A stretch of DNA of 63,166 bases, the filler included, from Pelomyxa schiedti (lineage: Eukaryota > Protista > Evosea): assembly GCA_020536535.1 (NCBI GenBank). It is 10 parts of 10 records of this genome, joined end to end, with 100 filler letters (N's around TTAATTAATTAA, not from the genome) between each part and the next. Parts side by side here need not be neighbours in the genome. Positions count along the whole stretch, not along the records: positions 4,230 to 22,382 come from JAHLWZ010001121.1; 9 more parts are not named here. One strand, written 5' to 3'. The notes under the pieces were generated by a model. That model was not told the DNA's origin and ran no database searches. It saw nothing but the letters and a program-made list of their open reading frames with translations. Every line of letters starts with the position of its first letter. The first letter of the stretch is position 1. Of the stretch, positions 10,742-21,790 are shown in pieces. Both the position numbers and the translations under genes were made by a program.

Positions 10742-13700
10742 ATGGGAGACGAGGAGGCGTCACGTCACGAAAGTGACCCGGACGAAGATCTCGAGATCCA
10801 CAGGATCCAATGCGACCACTACGGTAGGTATAAAAACAAAAATAAACCAACGGCCGTGCGTAGTTGTGTTATTTCTTTGTTGTGTTTTGCATGCTTTTTC
10901 GTTGGTAAACAGACCGTGTGGGTGTGTGTTTAATTCAATATTGGAAAAGACATGAACGACTATGATGACAGCAAATCGCACAACAACACATCTGATTGCA
11001 GCACTGAATGCTCGTTGGAGGGAGGAACCCCCCCAAGAATTATTTGTGGTATTGTTCGCCGTTTGACAGCACTTTATTCTTATGGACTGGAATTGCTTGT
11101 AGGGGAGCCAGACGTTGCAGCTGTAACACTTGAGACAATGTACTCGGCACGTTTGTTTTTCCCACAAGACCCATTTCAGGGGGCTGTATGCCACATTTCT
11201 GATCAGCGTATGCTTCTATACCACTAGCTCCTTTCCCCCAGCATTCTCTGAAGAAGACAACAGTTTCAATTGAACTGGTGGGAACTGGTTCATGCACTGT
11301 TACACAATTTCCTTCGTACTATTACTACGAACCTTCTTCCGACGACGCCATGGAATACAACATTAGTCCGTGGAAGGAGAAGCCTATTGACATATATGCA
11401 AAAAGCCCAACCCCACCGTACACAAACATTTCATCATCCTTACAACAATTGGAGGACCCAAACATTCCTTCAACTTGTGCAATCACACGCAGTTTATTTC
11501 AGCACAATAGACTGCCCATCTGTCTTGCCAAGGTGCGAACGTCATGTTTCCTTCTCTCTTTAACCAAGTTGTAGATCCAACTTGAATTTGTGCAAGAAAC
11601 TCTTGAGAGTTTTCTTTCAAAAATTCAACTTCCGGGCCTCATTCCAACCCTCAAAGCTCAAGACATCACTACACTCACTACCCTGTGTGCTGTGACACAA
11701 GCCCAATTCGAAGAAATGAGAATTAGTATTGGGAATCGAATTAAGATTACTTCTGCACTGCGTCAAGTTTCCCTACCTCGAGTTGAACCTGTGAGCCCAT
11801 TCCCCTTGAATTTAATAGTTCATTTTCGCATAGATATGTCTCTGTTTGAAGGCTAGTGAGATCGATGTCTTCTTCAACCGGATTCAACTGTCCTCGCTAT
11901 TTCCTTCATTTACTGCAGAAGACATAACGTCCCTCACTTTACTGCAAGACTTGTCACCAAATGACTTTACCAACCTCAAAATATCCATTGGGCACCGCAT
12001 CAAGATCCAGGAAGCTCTTGCTTCACTTGTAATATCCGACTCGGTACCTTCACCTCCCCATTCACCACCAGTCCTCGTCATGTCATCAACAAGAGCCCCC
12101 TCCCCAGGAACCCCTTCACCACTCAATTTTTCTTCGGCACAGTTTATGTTATCAGCAGCAACGCCCACTATTCCCTCACCTCACCAACTTCCAGCATGTT
12201 CCACACCTCTCCATGCACGTAGGGATATCTCTCCTCCTCCAGTTAATCCTCCCACTTCGTTTTTTTCCTCAGCGTCGTGTTCAGCAACACAACCGGGACA
12301 GGAAGGCGTGGTTTTGACTGGCGTTGTAGTGGACTACAGTCGCCCCCTTGGAAAGGGTTCCTTTGGGACTGTTTGGATGGTACACTTACTCTCTTCTTAG
12401 TGATTAGTTTGACATGACATTATTGGTTTCACTTACAGTCATAGGGGACATGGTTTGGAAGTATTGTAGCAGTAAAACAAGTGCTGGCCACAGATGACCT
12501 AGTAAAAGAAGTAGAAGTAAACAGGTCAGAACAGAGACATTCACCACTATTTTTCACCTCACTTTTTTTTAGGAGGCTAAATCACCCTCATTGCTTGCGT
12601 TGTATGTATCTCTATTCCACTCCTTGTGAATTGATGGTTTTATAGACTACGGTGTATGGTACAACAACAACATACCCCATATGGTTCTTGAGGTATTCCC
12701 ACTGCTAGTAATGCCCATCATTAACCATATTGTGCAGTTCATGGATGGCGGAGACCTCCATACATTTCTACGGAACCATAAAAAATCTGGTGGCACCTTG
12801 CCACCTCTGGACTTGCTCCTTATGGCCAGACATGCTGCTTGTGGTATGATGGCAATGGAAGAGCAACATATTGTGCACAGAGGTAGACAGTGTTTCTAGT
12901 GTAAGTGAGTCTTATGTACATCAGATCTGGCGGCCAGGAATTTGCTAATATCTAAGAATTCAGATGGATTTGTTGTCAAAGTAGGACCTCCGTACTTATC
13001 CCAGCACTTGTTTATTGCACTGTAGGTGGGTGATTTTGGTCTATCAAGGCCAACTGTTGATGGAATATACGAAGCTTCAAAAAGTAAATTCCCAGTCCGC
13101 TGGACAGCACCAGAGTGTGCACTTGATAAAAAGTTTACGACCATGTCTGATGTATGGAGCTATGCAGTGACTTTGTGGGAAATTCTCACCCATGGAGAGG
13201 TACACTCTTAATGCTAAGGGAACTTCCCAATGATAATTTTTCTGGTAGATACCATATTCTACCCTCTCCAATGACAAAGTGCTTGTCTCTATACAAACGG
13301 GCACCAGACTAGTGATGCCGCCAAATTGCCCCTTAGCTGTGTACTTGATGATGAAACAGTGCTGGGATATGTCACCGCACCATCGCCCCACATTCCGTTC
13401 TATCTTCAATACACTCACTGATGTAATGGACCAGATCAGTAAGGCACCAACACAAAATCCCACATCTCCACCCCTTCAGCACAGACTGAGCACATCAGAG
13501 TCACCTCCTGTTTCAAATACAAATGCATTCAACGTGCAGTCCTCACCAATGCAAATTCCCAGTCGCCAGCCTTTAATGTCATCATCGCCAGCACTATCAG
13601 CATCCACCTCAACTGCATTATCAATATCCGCTTCAACACCTACATCAGCACTATCAACCTCATCAACCTCAACTTCAACAGCAACAACTGTTACAACCTC

Positions 13701-14747
13701 CACCACCACTTCTTCAGCTTCCCCTTCCCATGCATCAGGTATAAAGAACACCTATCTTATTAAAACAACAATTTATACCTTGCATCGACACCCTTGCAAC
13801 AGATTCCCATACCTACTAACAGCTTGGTGTGTACTCTCCCAGATCAACAAGGCTTGTCTCAACGTCCCCTATCAACCTCCAGTGCCCGTCTGACGCGACC
13901 CATTTCGGTCTCTGGAGCAAAAGACACACGGTTTGCCTGTTTGACCTTTTATTGTAACTAAATATGTACGTAGATGTTATGCGCAACCAGTATTACATGT
14001 GCCATATGTACAAACTTCAACTGTATGCACTAGTACATCACTCTCTTCAAGGTTATTACTTGTTAACTGAGCTTCAAAACTTATCCCGCTACAGTTCAAG
14101 CACATCTTCCGCCTCGAGCTCCAATCCATCAGGAGAAATGGGAAATAAAGAGCGAGACTTATTCAAGTGGGCACAGGTAACGGATTAAGAATACTTAAGT
14201 TTTCTAATACTAACAAGGCATCTCGATTTGATTTGTTGGAAAAACTTATAAGATTGGAACTATTAAATTTGAATCTAGAGGCCACAACAGAACTTGGTAA
14301 CACATTCCTACATTATCTTGCCGCTTTGAGATACATTGACGAGAAAGTATTTTCTTTTGTAATCATCTCCCAAGCACTTAGTTGTCTAGGTGCTCAATGT
14401 TTTGGAACTGTATTGTGGTCACATATTCCAGCTCAGCAATAACAAGAAGGAGACACCTCTTCACATTGCTTGTCTGAGCAAGAACAAAATCATGATTCAA
14501 TTCCTTGTAAAGCAGCACTGTAATCCAGAAGCAAAAACCACGTATGCACTCCCACCAACCATCATTTTCTCCGCTCTTACCAGTACTTGGCAGACAAAGT
14601 TTAACTTGCTACGACTACGCACTCTCCGATGAGGGAATTATGCAAAACCTGGAGTATGACACCATGTCAACAACACAACATTGTAGTGTAGATCCTTCCC
14701 GGGCACAAGACCTGGGACTGGAACTTCCACCTCCATTTAATTGCTAA
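10742..14747 (+). CDS. Tyrosine-type protein kinase with two SAM domains and C-terminal ankyrin repeats
   Basis: Two SAM-like repeats (ISIGNRIKI, ISIGHRIKI). Kinase GKGSFG, HR/DLAARN, DFG, KFPVRWTAPE and SDVWSY. Ankyrin motifs GNTFLHYLA and KETPLHIAC. Single-gene linkage and ends inferred. Confidence 0.78.
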
Positions 14748-14843: not shown

Positions 14844-17711
14844 TCACAGTTGTGCAACTGAGAAGCACAGAGCCACAAGAAGGAGACACAAAGGTGAAGA
14901 GGCGATGCGGCCAGCGCCGCTGCTGTAGTCTGTAAGTGATTCCGATGATTCCACCGTGGTACTGCTGGAAGTGGACTCGCTGTACGATGAAGAGGTAGAG
15001 GTGGATGTGGATGAAGATGTGGAAAGGGAGAGGGATGAGCTCGACATGCTGCGTGAGATTGAGGAGGAGAAAGAGGGGTATATCTGGGTGCTGCGGCCGG
15101 GGTTGAGCTTGTCCATGTCAATGAACCCATCGAGCCCAAACGGGTCACTTATGTAGCTGTTCAAGCCATCTTGGTCAACTACCTGGTGTGGAGTACATAG
15201 GAACCATAAGAATTAATTACTGAGAGGAACTGTTTTTTTTTTCCTCGAACCTCAGTGTTGATAACATCTGTTGCGTTCAGTAAAACATTGTAAGAATCTC
15301 CACCATAAGCCAAAAAGTTGTTGGTGACAATTCTGGTGCCGGGTTAGAACCTCCAAGTTACAAAAGAACGTACCGATAAGAGGCAGACAGGTCCAAATCT
15401 ACACCCCGGACTTTTACGTCTTGCACTCCATAGTGGTACATATCATAATTCCACCAATCAAAAGTGATACCAGAGAATTGAAGCATCCCATGTGATAGTT
15501 GAGCTGATTGCAGCAGAACTTGATTTAGCTGTTGGTTTAGTGAGCCAAGTGTTTAGACCCTTTTGTTTGTCACCTGTTGACCAGTCAGAGTCATTACGAC
15601 CAGAGTATTTGCAAATGGAAGTACATTGTACGTGTCACCCCACGTTATGTTGCAAACTGCAGTGATGTGGGTTTTTTGGGTTGCATAACAATTTCTCCTG
15701 TAGATTTCATACTTGAATATGGACATATGATATCCGCTCGAATACCACCAGGATTGCAAAATCCCACGTCAACACTATTACCCCACAGATCCGCACTCCA
15801 AGCATAAGAATCAGCTATCAAGTCACCCTAAGAGCCAGAAGTTACTTTAGTCTTGATTGAAGATAGAAAGAAACCAAAAGGGATTCTGTATCATAAGCCC
15901 TTGTGAGGTTTACAGCAGTCTGCCCAATGATTTGTTCCGTCAAAGGTTCAACCACCTCCGCCCAGTATTCAACTCGGGCAGCAACTTCAGGATCCTCTTT
16001 ACAAGTGGTGGTATTTATGACATTCAACCAACCACTTAGTTGCGAATGGGTTCCATTGTATTGTAAATCAATCTGTCTTTGGTCAAATATGCATTTGCGG
16101 ATGGTCAAATTACCTCTCCCACCCAATGCCCTTTTTCACCGGCTTCACAAATCATGGTGCCATTCACTATGAACGGTGGGTCAATTGCAAGATGGTCATG
16201 TCCACCAAGCATCAGTGAAACTGGTTTATCGGCAGCTACAAGTTGGGCAGCAAGTGATTCAAGTCCCTACCTCTCCTCATTATATTTAATGAGTATCATG
16301 GTGGGTAACCTCATAGGTTTCATCAACTGAAACAACGTCATATGGTCCATCATGGCAAAGTAACATTAGAAAATCACATGCTTGGTTGACCTCATCATAG
16401 TAATGGCTCACTGTTTCAAAGAGATCTCGGAAATAAAGTCCTTGTAGAAGTTGAGGATGCAGGCCATGTTTATTTAATTTAGTCTTACATTCGCACCATC
16501 AGTCATGCCTCTAACAGAGATAGAAGGCGTTTCCGTTGTTGTCAGGCCTATTATCCCTACCTTAATTCCTGGGAACTCGAAAATGACGTAAGGCTTGAGC
16601 CATGATGGTTGGTCCCACTCAGTTCCATTCAGAATTATGTTGGCGGAAATCCACGGGAAAGTGGACTGTGCTATTCGGTCTGAAAAAGAATAAATCAGAG
16701 CTACACAGATACCAAGAAACGAAAAAGTACCCTGCAGGGTGGAAATGCCTTTGTCAAACTCATGGTTACCGATAGCAGCAACATCATATTCTTTGAGAGA
16801 ATGAAGAGTTAAAATGCAACCAAAGGCCAGAGAGGAAGATACCAATCATATTATAGATGTCAATTGTACTTTCTCCATAAACAAGAGAAGATATTGCAGG
16901 ACCAGAAAACATCACATCACCAGCATCCACAAGTAGAACTGGCGTACCACTGTTTTCTCGTACCTGGTCCACAAACCAGGAAATTCTGGCAGAGCCTCCT
17001 TGACCCTGGGAGTCTCTAAATCGATTGGTTAGTTCTATTGAGAGTGGAGAGGGATGGATGTTACGTCTCCAGATTCCCGTGAAAATCATTGGTGTATAGG
17101 ATAGTCAAGTGAGCAGTCTGCTGACTTGAAGATGTTGAAGAAGACAATGAATCGGAAGTTGACAAGGAATGGGAAGAGGACAAGGAATCAGAAGAGGATA
17201 AGGAGTCGGAAGAGGATATCGAAACAGAGTTTGAACTGGAGAGTGAAACAGATTCAGACTGTGAAATAGACTCTGAGCTTGACTGTGACGAAGATTGGGA
17301 GCTCGAAAGCGAAATAGATCCAGACTGAGAAGAAGAGCAAGAAATCGATTCAGACTCCGAGAGAGAAACGGACTCGGAGACGGAGTGCGAAAGTGACAGC
17401 GAATCCGAGCTGGAATGCGACATAGATTCCGATAAAGAATGTGACGAAGAGTACGACTTCGACTCTGAAAGCGAGTCAGACCCCGATGAAGACGCTGAAA
17501 CCGAGCCAGACACAGATTCCGACGAAGACACAGAGGAAGATTCAGAGGACGAATATGATCCAGAGGAGGACAATGAAAATGGCGAGGAGTCCCCCGCGGC
17601 TTCGCCTTGTGCGTGCTCGTGGTTGTAATGACACGCGCTCAGAGGTGGAATTGCAATCATAAGGCTCACTACAACACAAAGCCACAACCCTCGAGTCGTG
17701 CGCTGTGTCAT
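14844..17711 (-). CDS. Ecto-5'-nucleotidase/apyrase family protein with signal peptide, Ser-rich stalks and probable GPI anchor
   Basis: ILYTNDFHG, LVDAGD, AIGNHEFDKG, GIIGLTT, LGGHDH and VLPFANTLV motifs; hydrophobic C-terminus. Confidence 0.9.
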
Positions 17712-17842
17712 TGTTTCAAATTGATTGGGAGACTTCTCAAGGATAACGCGAAAAGAACAGGAAAAGGAAGGCGAAAGAAGGAAATCGAAAAAATCGAAAT
17801 TTCGCCAAAGTACACGCCAGAATTGAACTGACAAGGTATCTG

Positions 17843-20800
17843 TCACCAGTCGGGAGTCTGGCCCGGGTGCACAGCAAGGAAGAAGTACTCTGTTGTGACC
17901 TTGAGCCCGGCTTCCATCACTGTGAAACCCACCTTCCTGAATTCTTCGAGAAGTATGTCGCTAGCCCCACCGGCGTGGTACCAACTCCATCGGCTTTTCT
18001 CGTCAGCCACGAAGATATATCCAGTAGGCTTGCATATTCTCGCGGCCTCTTTTATGGCTTGCTGAACGAATTCCGGCCTGGCTCCGCCCCAGCCCAGTGA
18101 CATGCAGAACACAACAATATCGAAGGAATGTTCCTGGGCTCCAGTGGTTCTGAAGTCACACTGCACTATCTGGTAATCAGTGGGCTCTTCAGCATACAGT
18201 GCGTGGTCATAATTGGTAACCTTCCCCATGATTAGTTGTTGGTAGTACTTGAGTAAATTCATAAATGAACCTGTATTTGACGGTTTGTGTCCAGGTATCT
18301 TGCCAGTGCACAGGTTCCGCAGCCCATGTCTGCAACCTTACATGAAGTCGGACCAGACAGAGAACGAACGAATTTGGCCGCTCGTGCTGATGGGATTACT
18401 TCTTCGGGGGGTTGTCCTGGCCTCAACATTGTACGAAAATACTCATCTTGAAGCGCATGTAACCTCCTCCACTGGTCGAGTGTATTTCTGTCAGTTGACA
18501 AATTCTGATGGAGCTTCTCGGGATTCATTGTTGTCAAGCTCTGAAGAAGCGCATGAAGTTTCTTTTCGTTCTTGTCAATAGGTGGAAGATTAAAATGTTG
18601 GACAAGGAGCTCAATGAAGTAAAGGTAAGCCCCGGTCTTGCCAATCTGTGGTTCAGCGGAAATCACAAATCGCTGCTTCAGTTTGGATGCTAAATTTGGG
18701 ATGTTTTCCAGTTTCCACTGGTCCCTGTCAGATTGCTCCCAGATAAAATCGGGGTGGAAAAAAACAGCAAGTGATTCCGGTTGTGGCTGGTCAGATGCCT
18801 TCAATAGTAAAGGTGAGCCCTAGAAGACAAAAAGGCAGGTGACACACTTGCTCTGGTCTGTCAGTCTTCTTCAGACAACGGTCCAGTTGACCATCCGAAT
18901 CCCTGAGGGCGGCAACCGGATTTTCTGCATATTTGTATGCAGTTGGATTGAGAAGTACGCGCACACACGCTGAAGCTGGTGTATCAGCCTTGCACCACTT
19001 GAATGCACGTCCAATATCCTGCAGAAAAGCTGCAAACACGAACTTTTTTGACTTATAACGTGCCCGAAGGTCAAACAGCTTGAGGTGGCTTGGCATTGTG
19101 TCTCCCATTCGCGCCTTGTTGAGAAAAAATCAGAAGTGAAGTTAACTCAAGGTACATTGGCACAATTGGTAACCTTCTCAACCAGAACAAGCAAGAAAGG
19201 GAGTCTATTAAAATCCTGGTAACTTTTGACCACAGCATTGTTCGTCTGTTGTAATTCTGCGAGTTTTGCAGCGCAACTCGTACTAACCAACGTTTTGGAG
19301 CGGATGTCACCCTCAAACCCCGCAGAGTCAATTGCGTCATGAACACAGAAGAACCTTTCTTCTCCCATTCCAGCCAGGAGCCGCGAGATAATCTCGCCAT
19401 AATAACGCGAGAGTATACTCGGGAGCCGCACGGCCACCATGTACCCCTCTTTTATCAATCTTACAGCCTCCAGTGTATAGGGACAATCTACAATTTGAAT
19501 CCATCTTGCATCTGGAACTGCTTCACCATACTGTGGAACGAGTCTTAGTACCAATGAGAAACAAATCGTACCCTACCTCTTCGCAATGCCGCTTGATGAA
19601 CGCTGCGGCATAGGCCATTAGGCTCACGAAAGTGGACCAGTCACCAGAGTCGATAAGTTTGCTATATGTTGATGTACTACTATCATCAGCATCATTTGGA
19701 AAAAGGTCCTTGCAAAGTTCCTTGCAGGTACCTGGGGAAATCAAGTCACTTTTCAAGATGCATTGAAGATCCATCAGTTTTCGGCGGCCCATGTACTCCA
19801 TTCCAGTTTCAGGTGTTGCCGTTGTCAGCCATCCGTGCACGTGCTTCTCAAGCAACCCAGCGATATTTGAGAATGATTGCTTCAGCAGTTCAATCTGGTT
19901 CCACGCTGTGGCTGAAATCTGAAGTGTCAGCATATTGGAGCCTGGGGTAACAAGGGCCTTCCTGAGGATGGAGCTAATGCGACCCAATTTCTTGTCGCCA
20001 GAGGTCCTTGCTCCCCAATGGCACTCGTCATGTATGATGACAAAGAAATGATCGGGGAGGGACTTGCACCTTGCAGCTTTCTCAAAGAATGCCTTTGTGT
20101 CTTCTTTGCTCTGCTTATAATTGTTACCCTTGACAACAGAGATTCGCAGATTTCTCTTCCCCCCAAACTCACTGGCGATGTGTTTCTTAAAGCTCTCTAC
20201 TCTCTGTTGGGTCTGGTTGTACAGTGAGTTTCGTGGAGGTACCAAGATAAGGACGTCCAAGCTACGACATGAGTTGGGGAATTCGTTCCAGTTCTCCTTG
20301 ACCCTCTGGAAAAAGAGGTTGGCCTCTGCCTTCTGTGCTGGGAATACTTGGTACTCTGAAGGTGTGGTCAAGGGTTGTGTGCCATGGTGTGCTTTTGGTT
20401 TGATATCACGCATGTGTACTGGGGGAAGGATCTCTGCATATTTACTAAGGGATCGCAACGCCTCTCTTACACGGTTGATGACAGTGTCTATTTCACTTTG
20501 ACTGAGCGCTTTTTTCTTTGTTTCCTGCTGTTAAAATATGAATAAAAGACAGCAACCACGGAGATGGTAAAAGTTAGTTTTTTTACCTTCGAAATATTTC
20601 CTATATGTCCCGCATGTCCCTGCTGGGTGGGGAAGTCTACTCCACAATGGCGACATCGCCAAAGCGTAGGGCCTTCATGTTTCTGCTCCTTTTTGTGCTT
20701 CTTAAGGGACCGGCCGTCCTCAAGTACGACTCTACAGACAGAACATGGGAATGCGGCACTTGTCCACGGTATTGTGCTGGAGGTGAGGGTAGTTTGTGGT

Positions 20801-21537
20801 GGTGCTTGTAACGTATGAGAAGCTGCGCTTGCGTGCGAATCATTGGTGACCGTTGGTTGCGGTGGCTGCGTTGGTGGAACTGGCTTTTTGTGTTCACTGT
20901 TGACATGAGCGGTAAACTTCTTTCTTTCACTGTCTTGGAACGCAACCTTTGGCCCGCAGATGGGGCAGATCCATATTTTCGACTTATTCGGGCATTGGTG
21001 CGCGGCCCACTTGGCCTGGTCGACGCGGTGTTTGCACACGCCGCAAGCGAGAACGGAGCTTATCCTCGCGCCCCGAGCAGGAGTGCCGACCATCTGCGTG
21101 CTGTCTGGCGACAATGGCGCAGTAGCGAGATTGTCGGGCGGCGGCGCGGCGGCGGCGGCGGCGGCGGGCCCGCGCTTCGGCGCAGGCGAAGCGACCTGGG
21201 GGTCACCGCCAAGAGAGACGGCGGCGCGCTTTTGGGGAAGTGCGGGGTCGTCGTGGCTTGCAGGGTTCGTTGGGGAGGACCTCCTGCGGTGGCGATGGTG
21301 GTTTTCGTGCCGGTTGTGGTGATGGCTGTGGTCTGCTGCTAATGGAGTATCGGGATCCCTAGCAACCGTCGCACTTGTACTCGTTGTAGTGGTTGTGGTT
21401 GACGTTGCGGTTGCAGATGGGGCTGGGCTCGGGTTCCGGCTCGTTTGAATATCTGAGGGCCGAAGGGGAGGGACGGATTGGACGGGAGGGCCAGGAGGCG
21501 GAAACGATAGCGAGGGGGGTGGAATGCGTCCTGCCAT
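17843..21537 (-). CDS. C2H2 zinc fingers + circularly permuted SF2 helicase/ATPase + RRP8-like class I SAM methyltransferase (~1143 aa, 6 exons)
   Basis: GT-AG introns at 20528-20586, 19531-19576, 19115-19173, 18799-18847 and 18221-18270 give 3432 in-frame nt. Motif order: Ia ILVPPR..L..Q; DECH; SAT; EKARMGDT; QDIGRA; AEPQIGKTG; VADMGCG; DIVVFCMSL. Confidence 0.82.
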
Positions 21538-21790
21538 GAGATGTACAACCTGGTTGACCCCGACCAACAGTAACCGTACGGCTGAAGCGAAAAAAAAAAT
21601 AAAAAGTTGCTTGAACTTGGCGTTTTTTTCTGTTCCCAAGACTTGTTCCGAGCAGGTGGAGTTGCTTTCCACCAGAGTCATTCTGGGACAGCTGTGGGTA
21701 CTCGCCCACCGAACATCGAAGGTGTGGAGCCAGACCGCCATCAGTTGGATTCAGAAGGGACTTTCAGTCTCACCCATTTTTCGTACAAAA

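Follow-up and report, generated by a model that had tools for sequence, protein, structure and literature searches.

GREB1 and GREB1-like proteins, whose helicase was reportedly defined by Iyer et al. in 2013, combine a circularly permuted superfamily 2 motor (cpSF2; Pfam PF20692) with a TAGT domain (PF20691). Their chains are composed of an N-terminal Zn-binding or other module, the motor, in which the motifs follow the order Q, Ia, II, III, V and VI with Walker A last, and a C-terminal transferase (PMC7968844). Both the motor family and its permutation are therefore already known (PF20692; GREB1). A motor and a methyl writer are joined in one polypeptide in fungal DNMT5, which consists of SNF2 and a C5 methyltransferase, and likewise in the Type ISP enzyme LlaBIII (PDB 4xqk). 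A third relevant protein, RRP8/nucleomethylin (2zfu), is a stand-alone nucleolar protein without a helicase, and makes m1A645 (N1-methyladenosine) in yeast 25S ribosomal RNA (rRNA) (PMC6085284). In this study, we analyzed a 63,166-nucleotide stretch of DNA (hereafter the window), joined from ten parts of the assembly GCA_020536535.1 of the anaerobic archamoeba Pelomyxa schiedti, the genome and single-cell transcriptome of which have been reported (PMC8887013 and PMC10579272). One gene in the window encodes a permuted motor of the GREB1 type with intact ATPase motifs, preceded by zinc-finger-like units and followed, in the position of TAGT, by an RRP8-like methyltransferase; in contrast, the helicase of human GREB1 has been described as inactive (PMC7968844). 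Its likeness to DNMT5 and the Type ISP enzymes is one of analogy and not of family membership, since these belong to other motor clades and carry C5 or N6 DNA methyltransferases, whereas the window protein lacks a nuclease as well as DPPY and PCQ motifs.

The permuted motor, its methyltransferase and the transcript

The gene is located on the minus strand and encodes a protein of 1143 residues (Table 1). Its exons 2, 3, 4 and 5 matched PF20692 in the order of the profile, covering positions 2-157, 298-389, 392-436 and 662-703 of 716, with E-values from 2.8e-22 to 1.3e-5 for exons 2, 4 and 5 and a weak value of 0.045 for exon 3. The scores of exon 2 (79.6 bits), exon 5 (33 bits) and P0001, the NCBI model of the gene (152.4 bits), were all above the curated cut-off of 26.2 bits, and the locus was also retrieved as a PF20692 match in a scan of its own genome. 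Because these exons matched PF20692 and exon 6 matched Methyltransf_8, the motif pattern was judged not to have arisen by chance. The SF2 motor is circularly permuted. GK[ST] occurs only once in the protein, in a Walker A about 400 residues past DECH, and a motif scan of the 1143-residue model found no P-loop upstream of motif Ia, so that a canonical N-terminal Walker A was looked for and is absent. One Walker A located after motif VI was found in every relative examined, too. ResIII matched exon 2 from profile position 55 onward only, that is, past the Walker A of ResIII. Isolated P-loop segments compared with Pfam, which were too short to be informative, matched only the C-terminal end of PF20692, whereas no canonical helicase profile was matched at its N-terminus. 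The initial annotation, made from the sequence alone, had proposed a GREB1-type motor with permuted order and intact core motifs; all of this was borne out, the coordinates it gave for DECH, SAT, EK/ARMGDT, QDIGRA and the late GKT being exact in a script check, and the motifs being all present and invariant or nearly so in the subfamily described below.

The C-terminal domain matched Methyltransf_8 (PF05148), with an E-value of 6e-12 and 46.3 bits for the 125-residue exon 6 and 2.9e-16 and 60.4 bits for P0001 (cut-off, 27 bits). This was the best methyltransferase family here and in most relatives, although P0002 and P0015 scored marginally better with Methyltransf_11. A phmmer comparison with human RRP8/nucleomethylin (2zfu) gave an E-value of 5e-8, with S-adenosylmethionine (SAM) motifs I-IV alignable. 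When the methyltransferase model of the paralogue P0033 was compared with 2zfu, a Z-score of 20.6 was obtained (root-mean-square deviation 2.8 over 192 residues, 22% identity), the next entry reaching 15.5, and Foldseek related the methyltransferase to nucleomethylin with an E-value of 6e-9. On the evidence of these models, the domain is specifically RRP8/nucleomethylin-like and stands out from generic class I methyltransferases, in agreement with the initial annotation. Unlike RRP8, however, it is fused to a motor, and it did not prove to be the RRP8 orthologue of this organism: a better Methyltransf_8 match (112.7 bits) is located elsewhere in the genome on contig C213, to which the fused domain is only weakly similar in a comparison that was exon-split and so underestimates the similarity. 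The C213 locus is probably the true RRP8 orthologue of Pelomyxa.

To establish the gene structure, six open reading frames (ORFs) were placed by an ORF scan, and a script search for short in-frame GT-AG introns removing each frame-ending stop yielded candidates at all five junctions. The RNA contigs contained exactly five joints, identical to the introns of the script and all in phase 0. Translation of the exons (317 + 317 + 119 + 89 + 176 + 125 = 1143 residues) gave no internal stop, and the gene is thus expressed with one spliced product, as the initial annotation had predicted. The RNA was derived from public single-cell runs labelled "protist metagenome", namely four runs of one sample in one study, which are not mutually independent and are possibly from the same study as used for the genome annotation; up to 60% of the words sampled from the locus were present in them. 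The transcript model is a tiling path in which one to three contigs cross each junction. That no single contig runs from end to end, and that the junction of exons 3 and 4 depends on one contig with a 47-nt shorter side, would fit a locus made up of separate helicase and methyltransferase genes, or an artefact of prediction. Nevertheless, all five junctions are bridged, the introns are all in phase 0 and the frame is open throughout; intron 5 interrupts the methyltransferase domain itself, while the P-loop and methyltransferase motif I are both encoded by exon 5. Furthermore, the same fusion is intronless in the relative P0036 and also occurs in Mastigella proteins derived from transcriptome data. 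The transcripts hence do not split the locus, and the separation into two genes is already nearly refuted and hardly credible.

The structural predictions were carried out on P0033 (approximately 83-86% identical), with exon or database sequences used in the searches. P0001 was rejected as a folding subject, because its intron 4 is miscalled and motif VI is absent. Residues 330-1142 of P0033, modelled with a 29-sequence alignment, gave a mean predicted local distance difference test score (pLDDT) of 75.9 and a predicted template-modelling score (pTM) of 0.68. The motor alone (370-930) gave 81 and 0.83, respectively, with a pLDDT of 89-96 for the late P-loop strand and helix, and is in this model folded as one confident unit. 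It resembled SF2 enzymes with two RecA domains at tied Z-scores of 8-10 (RecG, DRH-1, FANCM, XPB, INO80, Mfd, DHX36, LlaBIII and HsdR; 8.9 for LlaBIII), most of the alignments ending ahead of the late P-loop element. In a split-chain test, RecA1 (370-560) and the late P-loop element (868-930) of P0033 were docked with ATP and Mg included. The interface score ipSAE was 0.78 (0.76-0.79 among runs) as against 0.02 for the best of three controls, 74% or more of the contacts were shared between runs, and the partner had a pLDDT of 65 or higher; when the threshold was calibrated, 51 of 78 solved complexes passed it, as did 2 of 108 mismatched pairs. The predicted interface included residues 478-484 (the motif II strand ending in D484 of DECH), residues 516-526, which form the SAT strand, and the helix that follows the Q motif. 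The docking of the paralogue thus places the late element beside DECH, a point that the initial annotation had proposed to check for the GKT loop, and supports, but does not prove, completion of the RecA1 ATP site by the permuted P-loop element beside Walker B. Overall, we regard the architecture and the family assignment as practically certain.

Table 1. Features of the Pelomyxa schiedti gene, in window coordinates
Feature	Position	Strand	Evidence or remark
Transcribed span (mRNA)	17775..21584	-	RNA contig tiling; poly(A) loose end at 17775; 5' end near 21555-21584
Coding sequence	17843..21537	-	1143 codons plus TGA stop (17843-17845); five introns
Exon 1, residues 1-317	20587..21537	-	Low-complexity N-terminus, then zinc-finger cluster
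Four zinc-finger-like units (CxxC...H/C)	20605..21045	-	C2HC 165-182, C2H2 191-216, C2H2 265-287, C2H2 295-311; pattern scan
Intron 1, 59 nt, GT..AG, phase 0	20528..20586	-	RNA joint in 3 runs
Exon 2, residues 318-634, RecA1 without P-loop	19577..20527	-	PF20692, E 2.8e-22
Q-like motif VFPAQ (378-382)	20333..20347	-	Q kept across family
Motif Ia ILVPPRNSLYNQT (411-423)	20210..20248	-	SLxxQT kept across family
Motif II / Walker B DECH (484-487)	20018..20029	-	D, E and H invariant in 29 sequences
Motif III SAT (522-524)	19907..19915	-	A and T invariant, S nearly so (29-sequence alignment)
Intron 2, 46 nt, GT..AG, phase 0	19531..19576	-	RNA joint in 2 runs
Exon 3, residues 635-753, first part of RecA2	19174..19530	-	Weak PF20692; paralogue identity
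Intron 3, 59 nt, GT..AG, phase 0, splits motif V (EK/ARMGDT)	19115..19173	-	RNA joint in one run, shorter side 47 nt
Exon 4, residues 754-842, RecA2 motifs V and VI	18848..19114	-	PF20692 profile 392-436
Motif V ARMGDT (EK before intron 3)	exon 4	-	K-R-GDT invariant in subfamily
Motif VI QDIGRA	19004..19021	-	QD-GR invariant in subfamily
Intron 4, 49 nt, GT..AG, phase 0	18799..18847	-	RNA joint in run X1; NCBI model calls differently
Exon 5, residues 843-1018: late P-loop strand and helix, helical linker, methyltransferase start (motif I)	18271..18798	-	PF20692 profile 662-703, E 3.5e-8
Walker A AEPQIGKT (890-897)	18634..18657	-	Sole P-loop in protein; A-P-GKT invariant in subfamily
RRP8/nucleomethylin-like class I SAM methyltransferase, ~residues 915-1143	17846..18582, split by intron 5	-	Methyltransf_8 and 2zfu matches
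SAM motif I VADMGCGTC (997-1005)	18310..18336	-	D-G-G invariant in subfamily; aligns with VADFGCGDC of human RRP8
Intron 5, 50 nt, GT..AG, phase 0, within methyltransferase domain	18221..18270	-	RNA joint in 3 runs

Two effector types and parallel fusions

A HMMER search against 1.84 billion representative proteins retrieved 32 matches at E-values of 1e-3 or less, seven of them at 1e-10 or less. Pfam scans of these matches and of those from two word-index searches revealed two architectures. In the first, the GREB1 type, cpSF2 is combined with TAGT, as in an Acropora protein and several other eukaryotes. In the second, cpSF2 is combined with Methyltransf_8, as in Pelomyxa, Mastigella eilhardi, Echinamoeba exundans (weak) and the aphelid Amoeboaphelidium protococcarum (weak), and in five further sources (P0006, P0015, P0022, P0023/P0032 and P0036). 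Relatives with the same motif order and a swapped effector, for which the initial annotation had suggested a search, were thereby found in both forms. In a maximum-likelihood tree of the motor core (26 rows, the short rows P0009, P0021 and P0024 being left out), a single change explained the methyltransferase and TAGT labels in 97% of 200 bootstrap trees, and the window protein was placed opposite the TAGT-bearing GREB1 branch. As judged from these comparisons, the cpSF2-methyltransferase proteins are a rare, distinct and conserved sister subfamily of the GREB1/TAGT branch; the family is rare yet old, being conserved across amoebozoans, an aphelid and other eukaryotes.

Among the 11 methyltransferase-type members, DECHWG, SAT, K-R-GDT, QD-GR and A-P-GKT of the motor, as well as the D-G-G of motif I and the Asp of motif II of the methyltransferase, were invariant. 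The invariance of both motif sets argues that both catalytic centres are under constraint. The ATPase motifs were also kept in non-vertebrate TAGT-type members, indicating that the "inactive helicase" of human GREB1 is not a family-wide property. Two particular arrangements were observed among the relatives: an EF-hand is inserted within the motor of P0018, and the intronless P0036 (L011:1817-3959, on a metagenome contig of ~100 kb) lies ~4 kb from a hAT-type transposase (ZBED1 RNase-like plus Dimer_Tnp_hAT).

The 52-Mb assembly of P. schiedti contains seven or more loci in which fingers, cpSF2 and methyltransferase follow one another in this order: the window gene, one locus each on C146, C97 and C1659, and three on C275. 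The C146 paralogue is P0033 (Pelo_1690), which is 83% identical to the window protein. The three on C275 are arranged head to tail within ~11 kb (G000:C275:92513-103729; loci L002, L004, L005 and L010). Their cores are 50-70% identical to that of the window gene, as compared with only ~30% for the N-terminal finger region, so that the N-termini of the paralogues diverge faster than the core. Exon 3, despite its weak profile match, showed 66-84% identity in the closer paralogues.

The subfamily profile also retrieved canonical helicases (ResIII/DEAD plus Helicase_C, some with HA repeats) bearing a C-terminal Methyltransf_8 domain, with E-values of 1e-27 to 1e-32. P0046 (L012:8001-11318) and P0045 carry three HA repeats in addition to their canonical SF2 helicase and C-terminal RRP8-like methyltransferase. 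One such gene adjoins genes for Erv1/Alr, a poxvirus-type poly(A) polymerase and TFIIS, a neighbourhood that we read as giant-virus-like, and two ESM Atlas clusters, with 92 and 89 members of this kind, were assigned to Nucleocytoviricota wherever the phylum was annotated (lead-level score 0.88). P0047 (L014:7001-9316), on a contig that also encodes the archaeal primase PriX, has an SNF2/ResIII-type helicase with Methyltransf_8 (E 1e-32); this helicase is similar to DISARM DrmD, with scores below the threshold. Like the window protein, these proteins have an SF2 motor and, C-terminal to it in the same chain, an RRP8-like methyltransferase, but they differ from it in their canonical order with Walker A first and in their viral or archaeal-like contexts. 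Their methyltransferase domains and the fused Pelomyxa domain are related at ~70 bits (mutual E ~1e-18), and the fused domain is nearer to the helicase-fused domains of giant viruses than to the C213 RRP8 locus of its own genome, although the exon-split comparison underestimates the latter. A shared origin of the whole helicase-methyltransferase unit was unsupported, as a cpSF2-core hidden Markov model gave the viral and archaeal-like helicases only 0-5 bits. On the basis of the domain-wise similarities, we interpret the pattern as one kind of methyltransferase having been fused independently to different SF2 motors. The fusions to canonical helicases argue for a functional link between SF2 motors and this methyltransferase type, and those of giant viruses suggest that SF2 motors and RRP8-type base methyltransferases form a functional pair that has gone unrecognised.

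The initial annotation had called the machine undescribed. In the literature searched, the scope of which did not extend to the founding GREB1-helicase paper, no description was found of the methyltransferase-bearing subfamily, its intact ATPase, the Pelomyxa expansion or the viral parallel, nor was there any literature on the giant-virus helicase-HA-Methyltransf_8 proteins, and none of the viral or archaeal-like fusions was found to be functionally characterised. The claim thus holds for the literature searched, but the subfamily is a conserved one and both Pfam domains are already listed in public databases.

Proposed mechanism and substrate

The helicase-methyltransferase protein probably methylates RNA or DNA using ATP. 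In the explanation that we favour with moderate confidence, three modules act in concert: the zinc fingers would bring the protein to a nucleic-acid target; RecA1, which lacks its first strand and P-loop, would receive them from ~400 residues later, after RecA2, by a folding back beside Walker B; ATP hydrolysis by the motor would open or remodel a structured or duplex segment; and the RRP8-like domain would then methylate the exposed base. By our own rationale, a product of the m1A type, as written by RRP8, would explain the attached helicase, since the methyl group is placed on the Watson-Crick face of adenine, which is buried by base pairing in a duplex. Retention of both enzymatic activities appears likely from the conservation of the motifs.

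Several points weigh against this explanation. The branch parting the two subfamilies received only moderate support (81/75); the Pfam matches of the fingers (zf-C2H2_6 and zf-BED) were weak and under the curated cut-offs; the structures were predicted on P0033 and not on the exact window protein; and the structural neighbours of the motor tie at Z-scores of 8-10 across DNA and RNA motors, so that they do not tell the substrates apart. Furthermore, in animal GREB1, the sole member of the family to have been studied, the helicase is reported to be catalytically inactive, and human GREB1 glycosylates a protein, namely it O-GlcNAcylates ER-alpha (PMC7968844), while an OTU cysteine-peptidase-like domain precedes the motor in P0006 (methyltransferase type) and P0013 (TAGT type), hinting at a link to ubiquitin-like signalling.

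The reported properties of GREB1 and the OTU domains would fit a protein-directed role, in which the protein is a methyltransferase for proteins or a scaffold and its permuted ATPase serves as a nucleotide-dependent switch or a nucleic-acid platform rather than a helicase. An inactive scaffold, however, would hardly be expected to keep ATPase motifs that are invariant or nearly so throughout the subfamily. The nearest characterised methyltransferase acts on rRNA, and the fact that ordinary helicases have been joined independently to a methyltransferase of this kind suggests that helicase activity itself matters. We therefore consider this role improbable, and protein as the substrate quite unlikely.

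As for the nucleic acid to be modified by the favoured three-module machine, none of the DNA-methyltransferase motifs (D/N/S)PP(Y/F/W), PCQ and ENV was found in the 1143-residue model, and neither the exons nor P0001 had a DNA_methylase match in Pfam. RRP8 methylates rRNA to m1A, and the window protein shows none of the classical DNA-methyltransferase motifs, which makes RNA no less probable a substrate than DNA; on account of the RRP8 affinity and the lack of DPPY or PCQ/ENV motifs, RNA is our leading, albeit tentative, guess.

The modules might alternatively constitute a DNA-directed machine, with fingers binding DNA, the motor translocating along duplex DNA or opening it and DNA bases being marked for epigenetic purposes or in defence against transposons or viruses, in line with the role in epigenetic marking or defence put forward in the initial annotation. 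C2H2 fingers are commonly DNA-binding, the best Foldseek matches of the motor include the double-stranded DNA enzymes HSV UL9 and EcoR124I HsdR, and Type ISP LlaBIII, RecG and FANCM were obtained at Z-scores of 9-10; double-stranded RNA and RNA helicases, however, score as high structurally as the DNA motors. DNA-base glycosyltransferases are relatives of the TAGT domain found in the sister branch (PMC7968844), but TAGT (PF20691) was absent in P0001, P0033 and the draft genome scan. TET/JBP had no match in the draft genome either; the absence from the genome is weakly supported, the assembly being a draft and the Tet_JBP control having matched 0 control genomes. Seven paralogues, three of them in tandem, with N-termini diverged to 28-35% identity over cores of 50-70%, are reminiscent of conflict systems, whereas PADLOC returned no significant match to a defence system apart from a generic methyltransferase match, and the PADLOC and NCBIfam scans gave generic, sub-threshold matches only. 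Considering in addition that the domain resembles RRP8, an RNA m1A enzyme (PMC6085284), and that it has no DPPY or PCQ/ENV motif, we regard a DNA-directed machine as unlikely, and the same holds for DNA as the substrate.

A bolder proposal, which we rate as a long shot, is that the cpSF2-RRP8-like proteins are helicase-coupled writers of a pairing-blocking, m1A-type mark on the Watson-Crick face of a base that the motor exposes by opening strands with ATP, that their fingers, diversifying among the seven paralogues, direct them to selfish or invading nucleic acids, for example RNA or DNA of retroelements or viruses, and that giant viruses use a comparable fusion with an ordinary helicase as its motor. 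If true, this would represent a new eukaryotic defence or regulatory system that poisons nucleic acids, and the ancestral task of the GREB1 family would be the ATP-dependent modification of nucleic acids. GREB1 itself is a much-studied hormone-response gene with a large permuted helicase domain. The window protein is a tractable sister form, with a full set of intact motor motifs and a methyltransferase effector that is simple and can be assayed, and may thus provide a route to the target of the motor.

N-terminus, transcript ends and neighbouring genes

The N-terminus encoded by exon 1 is rich in Pro, Thr, His and Ala, of low complexity and predicted to be disordered, and is followed by the zinc-finger cluster. 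The initial annotation had counted about four C2H2-type fingers, and a pattern scan indeed delineated four units. Their Cys and His columns were kept in the Pelomyxa paralogues and partly in Mastigella. Among the relatives examined, finger units were almost confined to Archamoebae, the exception being one finger-like pattern in the unplaced P0007. A poly-Ala run in exon 1 is encoded by a GCC-rich simple repeat (window 21131-21177), at which the RNA contigs break.

At the 5' side, the uppermost RNA contigs ended at 21582-21584, and the depth was nil above 21672. A loose end at 21555 was of the template-switch-oligo type, which we take to be the reverse complement of the SMART template-switch oligo. 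A script scan found no ATG between the RNA 5' ends and 21537. RNA contigs X1 rec 2/3 and X3 rec 14 (window 18087-18217, 19577-19917 and 20144-20506) differed from the window at 27 listed places. Editing or allelic variation was rejected as the origin of these letters, as 23 of 23 covered positions carried the letters of the C146 paralogue. These contigs (~95% identical to the locus) are therefore transcripts of the paralogue (Pelo_1690) aligned across the locus, which indicates that the paralogue is also expressed.

The public record of the window gene is wrong in two respects. First, P0001 is a model of 1113 residues without residues 777-816, including motif VI QDIGRA, owing to an intron 4 call at odds with the RNA. 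Second, its product name is "bifunctional metallophosphatase/5'-nucleotidase", though a domain of this sort is absent from it. The next gene downstream, likewise on the minus strand (window 16474-17846), begins with a very Ser-rich, signal-peptide-like ORF ending in LTILYTNDFHGNLET. This presumably resembles the start of a 5'-nucleotidase/metallophosphatase, although Pfam gave no match to the ORF fragments, and the product name of P0001 probably belongs to this neighbour. Elsewhere in the window, at 11846-13890 on the plus strand, ORF fragments were found that encode a sterile alpha motif (SAM) domain and the C-terminal portion of a protein kinase domain and are likely to represent one multi-exon kinase gene.

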